A stretch of DNA of 62,995 nt, filler included, from Choristocarpus tenellus KU-1152 (GCA_964200185.2; 10 parts of 10 records of this genome joined end to end with filler, not necessarily neighbours in it); one strand, 5' to 3'. Shown: positions 42,167 through 52,764, counted from the whole stretch's first letter. Numbers and translations are program-made. Notes: generated by a model from the sequence alone, not told the origin.

Positions 42167-45100
42167 ATGTCTGTCATTGGGGTGGACCTCGGAAATGACA
42201 CCTGCGTCATCGGTATTGCAGCTCGAGGTGGTATTGATATCATCCTTAATGAAAACTCCAACAGGAAGAACCCTTGTTTGGTGAGAGGACTTGAATATCT
42301 TGCCGCATCATGTAAATAAACACCTCTGCCTCTTACTCATATGCTGCTGCTGTTGGCATGAATTGGCTGATAAGGTGTTTTTGGTATTGTTGTATGGTGG
42401 TCAAGGAAAGATCCTTGACTGTGGGGACACTTGTGGTACGGTTTTGTGAGGTAGTTTTGTACCTAATGATCTATTGAAATGAAGTAACTGCTCTTCTTGT
42501 TTCTGTTCAGTCTATCTCCATTAAAACAAGTCCGTTGGGGAGATGTATTAATCTTGCAGGAAGGGACTGTTCTGGGGTTTCCACTTTGGATTAGTGACAG
42601 GCATGTTCAAGTTGGTTGAAAGTACTTTCATCTAATCACTTGAAGTTGTGTTTTATAAATTGGGGTTGGACTATGGAGAAGTAGATCTAGGCAGCTTGTG
42701 GATCTTGGGTTTTCCATGGCAACCTCAGCACTTGATTCTGAATCTCCTTGGATGGTTGTTGTAGTGGGATGTAGTAGTAATATCCACAAAGCTAGAGATT
42801 TGAAAGTCAGGTGATGAATGTGACCCTCCCCACCTTCTCCCTCTGTTCACCTGTGCGGTCTGTGGATCTCGAGAATTGTTAGTTCCATCCAAGTCTCTTC
42901 ATATGTTACACGTATTTTATGAAGTAGGCTTGAAATAGTGAATGCACAGGAGCTTAGGGAGAGATAGGAATGTTACAAGTGAAAGTATTGCTAAACAAGT
43001 TGTTGGTTTGAGAAACATGTTTTGTCAGTTACTTGAAGGTAGTCCTGTTTTTTGTTATGATTGCACATTTACTTTGATAGAGTTTTGTGCATTTTTCTTT
43101 ATCGGAATGCAATGCCTCCGTTGTCGTCTCATCAACTATTGGACATTGTGGGTGACGTAAACCTGCTGGGTTTGGGGTCATTAACATTGATGTTCAGGTT
43201 TCGTTCCAAGCAAAGGAAAGGCTGATGGGGGAAGCAGCCCTGAGTATTGCTAGGAGCAACTTTAAAAACACTGTACGAGAAGTAAAACGCCTTGTGGGGA
43301 GGAAATGGTCTGAGCCTGACCTTCAGGTGGACTGTGCTCGCCTCCCCTACAAAACCATGTGGGTCTACATCTTTTCCTCACCTCCCTATCAGCGTTTTTG
43401 TAACCCCTTTACTGCTATTATTGTACTTACGTCATGTAATGCCTCATTTTTATTCTCTTTTATTAGTTTAGTAGCTCCATGGTCAGCTGTTCAGTGTAGG
43501 CTGTAGATTTTTCTTGGTAGGCAGTAAACCTTTTCTGTAGAATATCTCCACCTCCAATGACCCTAATATACAGAGAACAGTAAGGTTTCCTTTTCAAATT
43601 TTAGCTGCTGAAATGTGAGAAATGACTGTTCTCTTTCCATTTCAAGCATGCTTCTGCTTCAGGGATTTGGTAGTGAAGATCGTTTATATATCACTTCTCA
43701 TTTCTGCAGAGGATGAACATCCAGTGAAAATGTACTAGTGTTTCTCTTGTATGAGTTATTATTTACCATGTCTATGCTTTCGTCTTACATGGCATATCCG
43801 AAGCCTCTCACCATCGCCACTTTTCCACCTCCAGCATCCATATTTATATAAGTTGCCCAAATCAGCATACTATTTTCTGGGTAACCACCTAGCTACAATA
43901 TATTTACACGGTATCTGATTCACCCACTAGTCTATCTCTTTAAAATGCCTTCTTTTTCACAATCTACCATCTACTCCCCAGTGCACACTTCGACCCCTCC
44001 TCATGAAGAGACAGCTCAGTACACATGCATAGATAAACATACACCCATCCAATGTGTGACGCTTGGTTGTTTGGCTATGCACACCAGGGTCTGTTGACTA
44101 TAGGACCGTAGCAACAATCTCTCTCTTCTGCTTTGAATGTGTCATTTTTCAGTGTTTATTATCCATTTAATTTTACAGTGAATGAAATAAAGGTAATATT
44201 TCTTCTCTATCGTCCATACTGACCATATTTCGTGTTATACTTGTTGCTGCTGATTCTCTTTTTGGAACTACACTTGTGACCATTGATAAAGGGAGCACCC
44301 TGAATCTGGGGGTGTGGCCATCAAAGTGATGTACGATGATGAGGAGAAGATCTTTACTCCAGAGCAGATCATTGCTATGATGCTCACAAAGGTAAAAAGG
44401 CCGGACCGTGGTAATCTCAGTTGTGTTGCCTGCCTGCATATTCTCACTTGGCTATTTCCATCCTTGTTATCCTAAATATAGACCAATGTAATGATTATAG
44501 AGGGCAGCCCCCAGTTGACACTGCTTTCTTGTCTTCTCGTCTCTTTGTTTCAAGTACATACAGAGTAAATATTACAGTAGGGACTTCCTAGTGAATGGAA
44601 ATTCATGATAAGGCTGCTCGACACCCCCCCCATGAACCTGTATATTTGCTGAGAAGACTGAAAACGTTTTAAAATTCAACTTGATGCTTTCCTAGGCAAT
44701 TGATGCAGGGCTGTGCAACACGCGAAGATGTTCCAATGGGTTCTTTTGTTCTTTTCTTGTTTTTCAACAAGACAATCGCTATTTGATCCATTTTGTGTGC
44801 TAATCCTCCCACTTGCCTCATACTTTGCCACCCCTCGTGTTAACTTGTCCTTTGTTTTCATAATGTACACCTCTTTTTGTATTTTTTTATTAGTGTAAGA
44901 CGAGACAACTTTTAGTTGATGCTAAATCGGCTGGGAAAACTTACATAATTCGATTGAAGTGTTGGTTCACAAAGCTACGACGTGTTCAGGTCACCAAGTG
45001 GTGCGTAGTGCTTCAAGGCTAATATCACTCAACGGATTGAAAAGGAGACTTGAAATTTTGTCTTGCAACTCTGGTACTCCTTCTCATATATTGTGTTTAA

Positions 45101-48100
45101 GATGAGCAATTGCTGATTTGTTTCTTGTTCTAAGGAAGGCCGAAGAATTTGTGTCTGAGGGGTTGGCCCATGGATCTTCAAACTTTTCATGCGCAAAGCG
45201 TCCGTGGGTCTCGGGAAGATTCAAAGCTGTGAAGTGTTGTGGTTTGTGGGTATCGAAACCTTGTGATGAATGTAATAGGTTGTGATGAATGTAATAGGTT
45301 GTCCGCATGGCTCCGTGACTTCTGAGATGTTGGTTGCAATAGTTCTGCTTGTATTGCGGTTGGAAAAACAACTTAATTTATTGTCTTTTTTCAGTTGAGT
45401 TATTCAGACTTTTCAATTGATTGAACTGAGGTCAATGTTTCTGTTGCAGTGCACAAAACTTTCTTTTAATTGCATGTTTATTTTTTGTTCACCTTGATCT
45501 TCCATGTAATATGATTTTTTTCTAAACTTCTTTTCAATGCTCAGTTGGTGGCCATTGCCAAGGCGGCAAACGCTAACATTGATGTTGCTGACACTGTGCT
45601 GGCCATCCCTGGGTGGTACACTGATTCCATGAGGCAAGCTATGCTGGTGAGTGGACATCTCTTGCATTCTGTAGTTTTGGATTGTGGGAACCGGTGCCTA
45701 CTTTGCACGGAATGGGGTGGGAGGAAACTGCTTCCTTCTTATAATAGTTGACAGATGGGGACTGTTTCCTTGTCATATTTGGTTTAATTCTTAGTGATAT
45801 ATGTTTGCATGGGCCAAAACAAAAAGGAGCGCTTCTCTTCTTAGTAAGGCCTTACTTCCAAAGCTACTCCTCTAGAAGCTCAAACCTTTCCTGGTTGCTG
45901 TGGTTTAGTTAGATAAATGCTACAGCCCTTTTTGCAATATTTACATTTTTTGCAAGTCCTGTGCATGTGTTTTGATGGTATCCAAAATACTTTCCTTGTT
46001 TTCTTTGCTCAGATCTAAAAAATGGAATCTTTGATGTAAGCAGTGAATAGATAGTGATCCATTGTTTGTGTTTGTGCCAGAAAGTGGTGGTAAGGGTTGA
46101 TCTCACGTAGTATTATTACTATTCTTGTATGCAACATGAATTGTAGGCATCGCTGTGTAAATTGCAAAAACAGTTGAAGCTAGAATGAGGTGTGCTTTGG
46201 TCTAAAATATGGGAATGTTGGAAAAGTAAAGGTTCTGATAGTGGCGATGGCCACTGATTTACACTGTGGTTACAAGCAATTTGTAGGAATGTTGATGGCA
46301 GGGTGAACTGAGGCTTAACTTAGGAAAGCACAGCTTAGTATTTTCAGTAATAAATAAAGTCATTGCCACAACTAATTTCACCAACGAATCACGAGCACAC
46401 ACACCCAACCTGGCAGGATGCTTGCACTGTTGGTGGGGTGAACTGCCTTCGTCTTATGCATGAGCACACAGCAACTGCCCTGGCGTATGGTATCTACAAG
46501 TCTGCAAAGGGTCTTTTTCACGCGACGGTGAGTTGTCTTGGTTAAGAAAAACTGCTTTGTTTTAGCTAATTTTTTTTGTAAGCACTCTACATGTAGATGT
46601 TACTGAGAATACGATTGTATTTCATCGGGTGCAAATCATATTATTTATCTTGCATGGCTGTTGCCTCTTTGTGTTTAGATAGAAGTGTGGCTGTGTTTGT
46701 CTCTGTAACTGATTTTTCGCAAATGGGATCTTGTACTGGCAAGCTTTTTATCACCACAACGATAGTTACTTCTTCAGGTAGTGAACACTTCAAGAATTAC
46801 TTAAGAGTACAATGTGCACTTCACAAATGGCATGGTTCTGCATGAAAGAAGAGTGTACAATTGAGTGTATATCTTGACCTCTCTCTTATCAACAAATGCA
46901 GTGGATAGAACATTTTTGCCCATATTCTCCTATGTTTTGTTAAACCTGCCGCTTCCTATCTTAATCAGTGTTAAAAGCTCACTACAGTACATTCAAGTGC
47001 TTGCTTCAAAATATTATCTTTAGAAGAAATGCACCCTTCAGGTGTGCAACACAGTTTCTATTTAAGACTTTGGAGGGGGGAGTAAAGTAGTCAGATCCTT
47101 GGTTTTCATTTTCTGCATCCCGATTTGCTTTGAAGTCGTATAATTAGAGAGTGGCACAATTTTGTGCCATTTTTATGATCCTCAACAGATTGTAAGTGGA
47201 TTGTTTTGTCCAAGTGATTATTATTTTAACAATCACATGCAGTCACCCTTTTACTACGTGGTTGTCTTCACTGTCGGGCAAGGTTAAGGATCAACCCCAG
47301 CGTACAGGTTGCAAAAATGACAGATGATATCCTTGAGGGAGGACCGGAGGTCAACAGGTGCAATAAAGTAGTACATCATGTCTACACCAAGATATTATAT
47401 ATATATGGAATGCATTAGGTGTATTTTGCTCTTTTCACCGAAATGGTTGTGTCTATTATCCAGGTTTGGAACCTGCTGACCTGTGCTGGTCCTAAAACCA
47501 TACCTGAGTTGTAAAGATGGAATTGTGTTTTAGATGGAATGGTTGTCATGCTCTTGGTTTGTACCAAGTAGAAAGAAAATAAATTTGCTAACTCTTTTCA
47601 AAATGCTTTCGCTTGCCAACTCCTCCTAAGTTTCCATTGCCCTGCTGCTGATACATGTTTAACGTTTGTGGGGTATGCAGGAGCCAGAACATGTGTTGTT
47701 CTTGGACCTGGGACACTCGAGCTTTAGCGCTTGTGTGGTGAAGTTTATACAGGTGTGTTTCGCACATCATAGCTGTCACTATGTGTACCGTGGTGAAAAA
47801 CAATCCCTGCTTATTTGATATGGTCTCTCTATTGGAATATTACCATAGTTGATGAATATGTGCTTGCAGTGTATATTTTTTTATGTAACACCCAGCAAAA
47901 GGATGTGTGATTGTGAGTTAAGTTGCCCTTTAGGTTACCAACAGTTTTAACCTGTCTTCACGCTCACACGCACCATGTTCCTCTTGTTCACCCTACAGGG
48001 CTCTCTCTCAGTGAAGTCAGCGGCATTTGACCGCAGTCTGGGAGGCCGGGACATGGATTGGGCGATTGTGGTCAAATGTGCAAATGATTTTAAAGCAAAG

Positions 48101-50304
48101 ACCGGAAAGGTAACGATGTATCCATGGTTGTTTGGTGTTTGGAGTACTGGTGCATGCTACTGTATTAGTGACATTGAGCCCGTGGTCGGGAATTTTGTGC
48201 CTATTTAATATAAGAACATTTCATTGTGGTGCTTATAGAGACTAGCCCTTAGAAAGTTCAATTGTCAATTTCCTTGGCAGTTGATATTTTCGCGGCTTCC
48301 ATTGGTGGTAACACATAGTCTTCGCCCTGCCCATTCCTCAAACCGTGACTTTGCCTACCAGGATGTGTTTTCCCAACCAAAAGCCTTGCTTAAGCTGATG
48401 GATGCAGCGGAGAAGGCGAAAAAGATCCTGTCTCCTATTGGGGTCAAGGACTCTGCTGTGAATATTGAATGCCTTTACGATGAGGTGAGCATGATGATAC
48501 AACGCTTTGTAGTAGTTGGGGATCCATCAAGACAAAATCTGATTCGGTACTTGCCTGTAAGTAAGGTATGGTACTATTTGCTATCATGGGGAATTGTACA
48601 GAATCTTCTGGTACTGTCCTGCGGCGTATGGTACTATACGCTCTATTACAGCCCTTGCCTAACTTTTCATAGAGAAGATGCACGATCTAGAAGTTGCACC
48701 TGCTCTTTGGTTCAGGTTCTTTCAGGCTTTGTTTAGTTTTGAATTGCATGATTATGTTAAGATATGACCAACCTTGATGACATCTCCACATCTCTTGTGC
48801 TTTTGAAGATGATCTCTAGTATTGTATTCAATTCATTGATGAAAGCCACAACAAGCCATTGCCTGTTCTCGATAGATGTTGAAGGATAGAATATCTCTAT
48901 TCTCAACAATAAAAAGCACACAAATCCTGCTTTGAATCCTCCCCTTAAACCTCTTGTCACCCCCATCCCCCTTCCCGAACGTTCTTTTCTTCTAAATTCC
49001 TATTCTAGCTTGACTACATTGGACGTTTGGAGCGGGGGGAGTTTGAGGATTTGATCAGGCCTCTAGTGGAGCGCATGAAGGCACCTGTTACACAGGCACT
49101 TGAAGAGGCAGGGGTTACCAAGGAACAGCTCTCTGCAGTTGAGATTGTTGGTGGTGCTACAAGGTAGGGAAGGGAGCATGGACCAAGTGCTTATACTTGT
49201 GCAGCATACTTCATGCGCAGTGGTGTAATACACAACTCATTGGGTGTTTCAACACACAGGAGCCCCCACTATCAATGCTCATCCCTACCATGACTCTTTC
49301 AGGTCATGTTCTGTTGACTCCTGCTGTAGTTGCAGGGAGGGTAACACAATAGGTCCCAACCTTTCTTGCCACTGTGATCGCAACTTGTGTATGTCCAGCA
49401 ATGACCTTTCAACACAAAAATGTGCAGGGTACCGCTTGTGAAGGACTTCCTTGCAACTCTCTTGGGCCGTGATAAGTCAGCCATTAACTTTGGTCTCAGC
49501 TGCACTCTTAATGCCGATGAAAGCGTAGCGCGTGGTTGCGCCCTACAATGTGCGATGCTCTCGAGCAGGTTGGTGGAGTGAGGTGTTTCTCTTGGTTGTT
49601 TTTTTCAGCTAAATGTGTATGTTATGTGTAACTCTTACGCACTGTGGTCGATCTTGTTTATCTATCGTGACACCTTGAAAAATGTTTTTCAGTGTTGTGG
49701 AATGTGCCTTCCCCCCCACCTATACATTATGTCCCAGTTTGATTTCTCTTGTAATGCCTTGAAACCCAGCTTGTGATGTACGTGTCCCTCCTTCTCTAAG
49801 ATATTTAAACTCTCAACTGGGTGTACCGTGCTTAGTTTTTTTGAGCTCAATACCTGCTACAGATTTGTATATTTGCTTCACTATGTGCACAGTAACATGG
49901 AGGGTGAACCACACCATAGATGTATCACCTGAAAAATATTTTATGGCTCAGAGGTGATAGGTACGTAAGAGTGTTTGCATTGAACAAAACATTTTTGTAA
50001 GGTACTTGCTCATAACTTGAAGCTCAAGGTGTGAATCAATCATCTTTCTGAAGTAACACCCTGCAATGGTGCCCAGTTTGATGTTGCTTGTGTTCTTTGT
50101 TAATGGAATATGCACTTCGATCCTGGTTCTAGTAGCCCTCACACTCTTTCACACATAAGACTGAAAGATATGACGATATTCTTTCTTATTATGAACAACA
50201 CGCATAAAGATTCAAGGTGAAAGAGTTTTCCATTGTGGAGGCGGTGCCCTACCCCATTCAGCTAGGCTGGGAGAATGATGATGGGGTACAGGCGGTGGAA
50301 GGAG
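42167..50304 (+). CDS. HSP110: Hsp110/HSPA4/Sse1-type Hsp70-family chaperone, coding exons 1-11 (whole nucleotide-binding domain); 3' part beyond the contig break
   Basis: Phase-consistent GT-AG exons: 42167-42280, 43198-43358, 44292-44391, 45545-45646, 46417-46527, 47681-47752, 47999-48109, 48362-48484, 49009-49163, 49428-49568, 50210-50304. Motifs [66 protein letters not shown] and [20 protein letters not shown] are typical of the Hsp110 subfamily. Confidence 0.96.
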
Positions 50305-50619
50305 GTGAGAGTATGGAATATATCTTCACTAGCTGAAAGATTGATTGATCTAAACATTTGTTATTATGTAGCTCTGAAGCTTAGACCTTGAAATGAACAA
50401 CTACTATTGCCAATGTAGTTGTTTCACCTACATTGAAACTGGTTGGGTATACTTGTAGGCCTGTGGTTAAGTGTACCTCATTTTATCCACAGCCTATGGG
50501 TATTCACCCTCACCCTTAGAGTGCCTTGTCGAAGGATTGGTAACTGTGGGTTGTGACTTGGTCAAATCTCACTGTAGGGATGTTTTGTGGTATGTGCAAG
50601 GAGGGGGGGAGTGTAGGTA

Positions 50620-50756
50620 TGTGGAAGTGATGACATGAGGCACAGGTGTGTGAGGCAGTCTGTTTGTCACGGGTACTTGAACCCACTCGTGAGCACGTGT
50701 CTGCACTGCTCCAAAGCTGCGGCCAAAACATTAGAGCCAGCTGTCTGATCCTTACA
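50620..50756 (+). ncRNA. Intronic box C/D snoRNA-like RNA, copy 1
   Basis: Box C GTGATGA 50627-50633, box D CTGA 50745-50748, terminal stem TGTGGA/TCCTTACA; sense to the Hsp110 host. Confidence 0.8.
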
Positions 50757-51239
50757 TTGTATTGCTTCATTTTTTTTCACTAGTATTTCCCCAGACTCAG
50801 TGTAACTGCTCAGTACAGGTTCCTAGGTAGTGATATCTGGTTTGGTTTATCATAGAATATCTCACATATATAGAAGACTATCTTATTTTTGTGAAATGCA
50901 TGCATTCATATCTTTTGTTGTATTTTCACAACTATTTTTAGGATTGCGATTGATTACTCCATTGGAATATACTTGTCCTTGTATTTATTTGTACAAGATA
51001 CAATACTTCAAATATTTTATCGTGTTCATTGGTTGGTAGTCAACTAATCCAGTAGTCATTTCTGTTAACCCCTATTTGTTGAGTTTATATAAAAAGAACT
51101 CTTTAGGAATTTCCAAGTTCATTCTGCATCTCGCCAATGATATGCCTAGTTTTCAGTAAGTTTTCGGTGTGTGTTTGTGTGTGTGTGTGACAAGAGAAGT
51201 GAAGTGAGCTTTAGTTTTGTCAATAGTGTGGTCAATTAT

Positions 51240-51378
51240 TGTGGAGGAAGTGATGACAAAAGGCAGGTGTGTGAAGCGACACATTTGTCACGGGTACTTG
51301 AACCCACTCGTGAACATGTGTCTGCAGTGCTCTGAAGTCGCGGTCAAAAGATAAAGAGCCAGCTGTCTGATCCCTACA
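51240..51378 (+). ncRNA. Intronic box C/D snoRNA-like RNA, copy 2
   Basis: Box C 51250-51256, box D 51367-51370, terminal stem TGTGGAGGA/TCCCTACA. Confidence 0.8.
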
Positions 51379-51620
51379 TGCTGTTGCTTTATATTTCAGC
51401 ACTGTTATTATTGGTGATGTTCTGCTGTTAAAAATATAATTGTAATTGAGATTGTGCTCTTCTGTGTTGTAGGGAAGTATAATGCTCTTTATGTACTCGT
51501 ATCCATTTACTGAGTATGAATATACCATTGATCAGGTTTTTATGGTGTTTGCTTTCAACACAAGGGCTCATATATAGCCCGTTGTTGGTGTTTTGGAATT
51601 GTTACTGTGCTATGCTAGTG

Positions 51621-51760
51621 TGAGATGGAAGTGATGACAAAAGGCATATGCATGTGAGGCGGTATGTTTGTCGTGAGTACTTGAACCCACTCGTGAGCAC
51701 ATGATCGCACTGCCTTAAAGCCGCAGCTGATATTCAGAGCTAGCTGTCTGATCCTTCTCA
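51621..51760 (+). ncRNA. Intronic box C/D snoRNA-like RNA, copy 3
   Basis: Box C 51631-51637, box D 51748-51751, terminal stem TGAGATGGA/TCCTTCTCA. Confidence 0.8.
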
Positions 51761-52090
51761 AGGATGTTGTGTTCTAGTCTACCGGTGGTTGTAACTTTGT
51801 TGAAAATAGGGGTGCATGAGGAACTCTGTAATCCGATATCTATATATAAAAGATTTTGCAGTGTTTTTGCATGTGTGTTTTTCTGCTGTACTCAACAAAA
51901 AGAGCATTAATAGATCGGTGCGGTGTTGGCAATCCCTGTACTTGTTTTGTTTGATGTACCTCCGTGGTGTAAATAGCTGTGTTAAGGGGCCGCAGGAAAG
52001 CAGTTTGTATAGTTGGAAGATACATAAGTGTTATTGACCGTATGTCAACTTGCCCAAAGGTTAAGGGGTGGTGCTATTTTGTTTGTTGTG

Positions 52091-52229
52091 AGGTGGAAGT
52101 GATGATGCAAGGCACAAATGTTTGAGGCAGCATGTTTGTCATGGGTAATTGAACCCACTCGTGAGCACATGCTTGCACTGATCTTATGCCGCAAGCAAAG
52201 AATTTATGGCTTGCAGTCTTATCCAACCT
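52091..52229 (+). ncRNA. Intronic box C/D snoRNA-like RNA, copy 4 (box D degenerate, CTTA)
   Basis: Box C 52099-52105, terminal stem AGGTGGA/TCCAACCT, central hairpin retained. Confidence 0.6.
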
Positions 52230-52764
52230 TTTTTCACTCTCTCCCTACCCCCTTTTTAAACCTTACAAGCCCTACGATACAAGTAACCTAGTTGCTACTT
52301 TTCCAAAAGCTCTTTCTCCAGCAGCAGTCTGGTTCCCTAGTACCATGCCTTATCCATGCCATGTGCTTGAGTGTACCGCGCTGTGGATTTGATGTTTCCG
52401 CTTTTGCCGGTGTTCTTGAGGGAACCTTTTATGCACTTGTTGTTTGCTGTGCAATGTATTTGATTTCATCATAGCAGAGATTGAATGTGTATTTGGGTGT
52501 ATCTTGGGGGTTGTTCTGTACTGCTGTTGTTTTATAATTAGTTGTTGAACAGGCAATACATTAGTTTGGTGTGTTGGGTCAAAGTATCTGGGGGGGGGGG
52601 GGGGGGGGGGGGGGCCGTTTTTACCCTTTTTTTGATTTTTCCTTTTTNNNNNNNNNNNNNNNNNNNNNNNNNNNNNNNNNNNNNNNNNNNNTTAATTAAT
52701 TAANNNNNNNNNNNNNNNNNNNNNNNNNNNNNNNNNNNNNNNNNNNNATGTATATATTATTATT

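Follow-up and report, generated by a model that had tools for sequence, protein, structure and literature searches.

The window (the whole stretch of 62,995 nucleotides of Choristocarpus tenellus KU-1152 DNA that was analysed) contains exons of a chaperone gene, one intron of which holds four copies of a structured RNA element (Table 1). When the open stretches of this gene were searched one at a time, rather than as a joined spliced protein, eight of them matched Pfam HSP70; the last of these has Hsp105 and Sse1 as its best solved relatives, so we assign the host as an Hsp110-type chaperone that is read from the + strand. The original prediction placed the cluster in a single Hsp110 intron. 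That much is correct, but an exon that encodes the start of the substrate-binding domain had been overlooked, and the intron follows this exon instead of opening at ~49575.

Table 1. Positions of the host gene segments and RNA copies in the window, and covariance-model matches in contigs of other samples
Feature	Position	Strand	Basis
Upstream host exons, nucleotide-binding domain	42167..49575	+	Pfam HSP70 matches exon by exon; eight open stretches, 42167 to ~49572-49575
Hsp110 exon, start of substrate-binding domain (RFKVKEF...)	~50208..50304	+	open frame; spliced contig; orthologous exon peptides P0004-P0020
Host intron, at least 2.3 kb, runs past the end of the piece	50305..52647	+	spliced contig; canonical GT donor at 50305
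Copy 1, including extended terminal stem	50617..50757	+	
Copy 1, GGA...UCC	50623-50751	+	
Copy 1, box C	50627-50633	+	
Copy 1, invariant core	50663-50696	+	
Copy 1, apical stem	50667-50674/50685-50692	+	
Copy 1, apical loop	50675-50684	+	
Copy 1, box D	50745-50748	+	
Copy 2	51240..51379	+	
Copy 2, GGA...UCC	51246-51373	+	
Copy 2, core	51284-51317	+	
Copy 3	51621..51760	+	
Copy 3, GGA...UCC	51627-51754	+	
Copy 3, core	51667-51700	+	
Copy 4	52089..52230	+	
Copy 4, GGA...UCC	52095-52224	+	
Copy 4, core	52135-52168	+	
5' part of RNA, contig L009			covariance model, 37 bits
5' part of RNA, contigs L144 and L145			covariance model, 30 bits
5' part of RNA, contig L146			covariance model, 15.6 bits
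5' part of RNA, contig L147			covariance model, 10.7 bits
5' part of RNA, contig L148			covariance model, 12.9 bits
5' part of RNA, contig L149			covariance model, 51.6 bits

The extent of this intron emerges from contigs of three public runs of the same organism (X1, X2 and X3) that we compared with 50150-52647. Over the compared stretch, a 13.7-kb contig of run X1 differs from the window in two places. In X3, apparently a cDNA-like run and the only RNA run on record to include the locus, one contig, at a depth of ~1390, matches the compared stretch only at 50208-50309; on one side it continues into the preceding exon, and on the other into sequence that is absent from the window. This contig is a spliced transcript. 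Since it skips the cluster, and since the next exon lies outside the piece of genome represented here, all four copies reside in one intron; we found no Hsp110-like open frame in the intron segment that could serve as an exon between the copies. Some X3 contigs of low depth (2-9) fall within the intron as well; their coverage is not restricted to the RNA bodies, and they are uninformative on the mature RNA or its ends. Open frames in the minus frames across the RNA had no match in a set of 5.8 billion proteins; a single exon peptide used as query was likewise blank despite the existence of relatives, so this blank reflects the word index. A run of ~25 G residues lies at 52593-52617, just before the end of the piece; it is probably the reason that the source contig ends there, and hence that neither the 3' part of the intron nor the next exon is present.

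Reading of 50400-52647 together with the output of a repeat finder describes one direct-repeat family with four members, all on the + strand, i.e., sense to the host, as was originally proposed. The sequence GGAAGUGAUGA occurs exactly four times; the same is true of the 3' motif GUCUKAUCC (GUCUGAUCC; in the last copy, GUCUUAUCC), which in each case lies 128-130 nt beyond GGAAGUGAUGA. Each unit measures 128-130 nt from GGA to UCC, and ~140 nt with its extended end stems. The spacers are 494, 253 and 340 nt when counted between the GGA...UCC limits, and ~480, 240 and 330 nt when counted between the extended stems; these latter values match the 240-480 bp that had been claimed. The RNA bodies show a pairwise identity of 71-85%, as compared to 50-61% for their 100-nt flanks when processed by the same aligner, which is the level obtained with random 100-mers of the piece (mean 55%). 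Flanks that have been randomised around bodies that have been kept indicate that the duplications are old. A likeness of ~35 nt extends past the 3' ends of copies 1 and 2 (50750-50787 versus 51372-51409; 80% over a 55-nt repeat), which would fit with these two being the most recent duplicates; identity between the two bodies is 85%. The spacer between them contains a (TG)n microsatellite (51166-51192), which was passed over as a repeat in the contig comparison. The public runs differ by single bases at 50463, 51916 and 52384, and by an 11-nt insertion at 51876; all four differences fall in spacers or flanks and none in an RNA body, a distribution that is not significant on its own.

The positions of the conserved motifs bear out the boxes that were predicted to open and close each unit: box C (GUGAUGA) is located near the 5' end of 4/4 copies, and box D is CUGA in copies 1-3 but a degenerate CUUA in copy 4. 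With this box D, copy 4 may be impaired, or assemble poorly. When RNAalifold was applied to the four copies, it returned a closing stem (GGA/UCC), a long central hairpin with an apex that comprises an 8-bp stem and a 10-nt loop, and a short 3' hairpin just before box D. There are 35 pairs in this consensus structure, and 97.1% of its 139 cells are paired, whereas only 30-44% are paired if the partners are slid by 1-3 columns. Furthermore, seven pairs are changed on both sides (shuffled mean 3.1; 2/500 shuffles as high), and the covariation score is above that of 500/500 shuffles. These tests, in which 0-2 of 500 shuffles reach the observed values, agree with the earlier proposal of a co-varying central hairpin, although four paralogues make a small sample for such statistics. 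Six of the double changes are in the middle stem of the central hairpin; the other is in the 3' hairpin, which copy 4 has rebuilt as GCAAGC/GCUUGC. The fold also identifies the strand: the + strand pairs 135/139 cells, with 26 G-U cells, as compared to 110/139 on the minus strand, and so the RNA corresponds to the + strand, sense to the host. The single-sequence folding energies of the copies are unexceptional, as is usual for snoRNAs.

The terminal stem consists of the invariant GGA/UCC plus 4-5 copy-specific pairs. It had been claimed that the flanks differ between copies yet stay complementary. This holds for copies 2-4, in each of which the extension is better than 93-97% of random flank pairs (P ~0.03-0.07 each), but not for copy 1, where flank complementarity is no better than random; the combined P for all four copies is ~0.013 versus random intron flanks. 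We consider the copy-specific extension of the terminal stem to be real but modest. As for C' and D' boxes, the four-copy alignment contains no conserved interior UGAUGA-like or CUGA-like motif, which is in keeping with the long RNA without obvious C'/D' boxes that was initially described. Such boxes are often degenerate in eukaryotes, and their absence is not disqualifying for the class. We obtained no further C/D candidates by C/D scanning of the piece, or of distant Hsp110 loci.

The most constrained part of the RNA is a 22-nt stretch (ACUUGAACCCACUCGUGAGCAC) that comprises the apical loop and the 3' strand of its stem. Of the copies that reach this stretch, 4/5 keep it unchanged; copy 4 has one substitution, in the loop. 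Variation in the apical stem is confined to its 5' strand (UCACGGGU, UCGUGAGU and UCAUGGGU in the window; UCGCGGGU in relatives), and pairing is kept through G-U pairs: in copy 3, for example, it is the 5' strand that is altered to give G-U pairs, and the 3' strand is unchanged. Apart from the copy 4 substitution, the sequence that runs through the loop and the 3' strand to the GCAC that follows is unchanged wherever it is reached. Such one-sided constraint would follow if the loop and the 3' strand had a second job, either pairing in trans or protein binding; in that event the 5' strand need merely cover the element. The core returned little from wider searches. A 30-nt version had no match in the metagenome scan; a 16-mer gave seven matches in viral contigs that had no further resemblance to the RNA, and we rate these as chance. 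The reverse complement of the loop and 3' strand (GUGGGUUCAAGU..., 50675-50696 and equivalents) is like a Pol III B box or a tRNA T stem-loop. A strict B-box pattern does not fit, and no tRNA-like fold was found; the likeness could point to a tRNA partner, or be coincidental.

The exon just upstream of the cluster served as a handle for the recovery of homologues. An exhaustive HMMER search with a 42-residue peptide, followed by a profile search with the aligned exon peptides, yielded matches in short open frames in assemblies of other public runs. The surrounding contigs were fetched and scanned with a covariance model built from the four window copies. Seven contigs, from at least six other sequenced samples, contain the 5' part of the RNA (10.7-51.6 bits; E down to 1e-11), and a pattern search agrees. 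In 7/7 of these contigs the match shares the strand of this same Hsp110 exon and lies 0.2-1.5 kb downstream of it. The box C of the orthologous loci reads AUGAUGA, GUGAUGA or UUGAUGA. Alignment of the window copies with these orthologues highlights a nearly invariant GGCAC that lies 5-7 nt after box C, and an invariant UUUG that precedes the apical stem; where present, this stem and its loop are conserved too. The same RNA after the same exon in other samples argues that it is real and under selection. Conservation in relatives, upon which the original prediction had staked its case, is therefore present in orthologous Hsp110 introns; in conjunction with the covariation, and with bodies that are conserved between flanks at the random level, it sustains the idea of a selected, multi-copy family.

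All seven contigs (7/7) break inside the conserved core, so that recovery of the orthologues stops at their 5' halves. De Bruijn assembly ends contigs at a (k-1)-mer that is common to several copies, and contigs of run X2 break likewise inside the window's own copies. We take the breaks as indirect evidence that the RNA is multi-copy in the genomes of the other samples too. Within the DNA at hand, the RNA was not found in more distant Hsp110 orthologues (L132, L134, L135 and L136-L143), and no Rfam family was found in any related locus that we examined. Three of these distant loci (L132, L134 and L135) are long metagenome contigs that carry intron-rich Hsp110 genes of uncultured eukaryotes; in these, the exons that flank the 49576-50207 intron of the window are fused.

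To which family might such an RNA belong? An Rfam 15 cmscan, one of the checks that was originally suggested, gave no match on any copy at E<=10, either for the whole piece or, with permissive filters, for the 1.65 kb that holds the copies; the library used contains U14, U3, U8, U13, U22 and all of the plant snoR families. Literature searches returned no description of the RNA or of its core sequence, and there is no match in the Ectocarpus miRNA supplements. We consider it likely, though well short of certain, that the four elements are paralogues of a hitherto undescribed box C/D snoRNA of ~130 nt, conserved within its clade and transcribed as part of one Hsp110 intron, and we predict that they are not guides.

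Several known systems resemble this arrangement in part. U14 (SNORD14) is found in introns of hsc70/HSPA8 in vertebrates; in addition to serving as a guide, it has a non-methylation function in the processing of pre-rRNA, and in yeast and plants it is ~120-130 nt long, with a central stem-loop. Like U14, the RNA described here is a multi-copy box C/D candidate inside a gene of the Hsp70 superfamily. On the other hand, it does not match the Rfam U14 model at E<=10, it lacks any complement of >=10 nt to 18S, including the sites to which domains A and B of U14 pair, and its copies share one common intron, whereas those of U14 occupy separate introns. There is also a likeness to U8, U13, U22 and U3, which are long and highly structured, have conserved internal elements outside D/D'-adjacent guides, and act by base-pairing or chaperoning rather than (only) by methylation. 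Nevertheless, there is no sequence or profile similarity to these RNAs, and box C is here at the very 5' end, so that the 5' extension of U3, U8 and U13 is absent. The intronic and polycistronic box C/D clusters of plants, of which intronic snoRNA gene clusters in rice are reportedly an example, offer a further parallel: several snoRNA genes in one intron or precursor, in the sense orientation and with unrelated spacers, that need endonucleolytic release rather than simple debranching and trimming. The predicted copies likewise place more than one snoRNA gene, sense to the host, in a single spliced intron. They differ from the plant clusters in that all four units are paralogues of one family without an Rfam relative, in their length (~130 nt, as compared to 70-100 nt), in the lack of a visible guide element, and in a host that is not a land plant.

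Among the alternatives to a non-guide RNA, an ordinary 2'-O-methylation guide was pursued against a metagenomic set of 119 eukaryotic rDNA loci (L013-L131). The 11-nt sequence GAGCYAGCUGU, which precedes box D in copies 1-3 (50737-50748, 51359-51370 and 51740-51751), can pair with the universally conserved 28S segment GUAGCUGGUUC; with G-U pairs allowed, this 11-mer matches 63/119 loci, mostly at one conserved site ~0.8-1.3 kb into 28S. The methylated C would be that opposite the fifth guide nucleotide upstream of box D, in the 28S segment GUAGCUGG, and the long hairpin would be a lineage-specific decoration. Copies 1-3 conserve the candidate guide directly against box D, where the rule places it. 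However, three of its 11 bp are G-U pairs (four in copy 3), G-U-tolerant rDNA matches are no more numerous than for shuffled sequences, and no Watson-Crick 10-mer complement of any copy occurs at a site common to >=5 of the 119 loci. Moreover, the segment is locked in a co-varying hairpin that copy 4 has kept with a different sequence, thereby losing the fit to the 28S site. We therefore regard a guide of this type as unlikely. Other searches of rDNA were also negative: the 34-nt core has no complement in the 119 loci at up to 2-3 mismatches, and an energy-based duplex scan of three full rDNA units was dominated by GC-rich spacers; the one site common to all copies was a weak 4+5-bp split match in 28S, which we rate as chance. 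As a separate matter, a search of viral contigs with an 18S pattern had a single return, an odd and truncated eukaryotic SSU match at the end of an IMG/VR viral contig (L008, 3632-4543) that spans the whole model in only 912 nt; it represents either a reduced or odd SSU, or contamination.

It is also improbable, in our estimation, that these RNAs belong to a specialised box C/D class: a Cajal-body scaRNA that acts on snRNAs, an acetylation-type RNA (snR4/snR45/U13), or a tRNA guide. Their length, their structure and the lack of C'/D' boxes would suit such a class, as would two tandem U-G/G-U pairs that are invariant in all copies, and the T-arm likeness considered above might suit a tRNA guide. 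Yet, set against the long UG-repeat stems that C/D scaRNAs have in vertebrates, two wobble pairs are very little. The acetylation guides snR4, snR45 and U13 use two antisense stretches that flank a CCG in helix 34 or 45 of 18S; no bipartite or simple 18S complement was seen in the rDNA set, as scanned for Watson-Crick 10-mers and for G-U-tolerant matches.

We give still less weight to a repeated cis-element of the Hsp110 intron, such as a splicing or heat-responsive structure, or a set of hairpins that yield small RNAs, in place of a trans-acting RNA. The constant location in the same intron of a stress-chaperone gene, in the sense orientation, would be accounted for, and the central hairpin is long enough for dicing; however, a cis-element gives no reason for a perfect box C to recur in every species, together with box D and a terminal stem wherever the 3' end is available, no match emerged from the Ectocarpus miRNA supplements, and the core has no complement elsewhere in the host gene. 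It is very improbable that the elements are a mobile or satellite-like repeat (SINE, MITE or tandem repeat) in which C/D-like motifs arose by chance: they are multi-copy, and the relatives' assemblies do break inside the RNA, but 1.4 million X1 contigs of the same species (349 Mb) contain no extra contigs >=80% alike on the copies, target-site duplications are lacking (longest common flank word 4-5 nt), A/B boxes and T-runs are absent from both strands, ARAGORN finds nothing and there is no tRNA-like fold, each copy has an end complementarity of its own whereas terminal inverted repeats would be identical, random-level flanks adjoin conserved bodies with compensatory changes, and 11/11 copies seen are sense to the same host gene.

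Returning to the non-guide box C/D snoRNAs that we favour, we infer their RNP assembly, processing route and mode of action as follows. Where there is one snoRNA per intron, release can proceed by debranching and exonucleolytic trimming; polycistronic snoRNA precursors of plants and yeast are instead opened by endonucleolytic cuts. With four units in one intron, endonucleolytic cuts in the spacers are needed. Snu13, Nop56, Nop58 and fibrillarin would assemble on the kink-turn that boxes C and D make with the terminal stem. Cuts in the spacers would separate the units, in the style of plant clusters, and trimming would then proceed back to the protected stems. The terminal stems (8-9 bp) would have two roles: holding boxes C and D together for assembly, and stopping the exonucleases.

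The working element in this scheme would be the 22-nt stretch of the loop and 3' strand, as a masked antisense or as a protein-binding module, and it would act on a lineage-specific target, for example a pre-rRNA spacer; the RNA would thus be part of a guide-less, chaperone-type snoRNP, with a mode of action closer to that of U8, U14 or U22 than to that of a guide. The RNA is not a classical methylation guide if judged by the locking of the pre-box-D region in a hairpin, by the absence of C'/D' boxes, and by the lack of a good complement in conserved rRNA; as far as the sequences can indicate, it probably acts through the invariant 22-nt element instead. We tentatively extend this hypothesis, to a degree that we consider speculative, as follows: the RNA would be a clade-wide, essential, non-guide snoRNA, an independent counterpart of U8/U14/U22 in this algal lineage. 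Its 22-nt element, kept covered by a 5' strand that drifts, would find its partner in a pre-rRNA spacer specific to the lineage, or outside rRNA, for example in the T-arm of a tRNA, and the supply of the RNA would be tied to Hsp110 transcription, such that ribosome assembly responds to proteotoxic stress. The coupling of chaperone expression to RNA processing that was originally proposed would follow only from co-transcription, which is itself predicted.

Inventories of snoRNAs are thin outside animals, fungi and land plants, where annotation proceeds by means of generic predictors. An orphan, guide-less snoRNA would, if it were only that, be useful but not surprising. What we describe is a new candidate family with an unusual build, i.e., long, fully structured, devoid of C'/D' boxes and without a visible guide, that has a fixed genomic address: the same Hsp110 intron across several organisms. 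The four copies provide a ready covariance-model seed with which related genomes can be annotated, and they would exemplify the plant-style, multi-snoRNA intron in another eukaryotic lineage. Finally, this RNA is a concrete candidate for a lineage-specific ribosome-biogenesis factor, the expression of which would be tied to a stress-chaperone gene.
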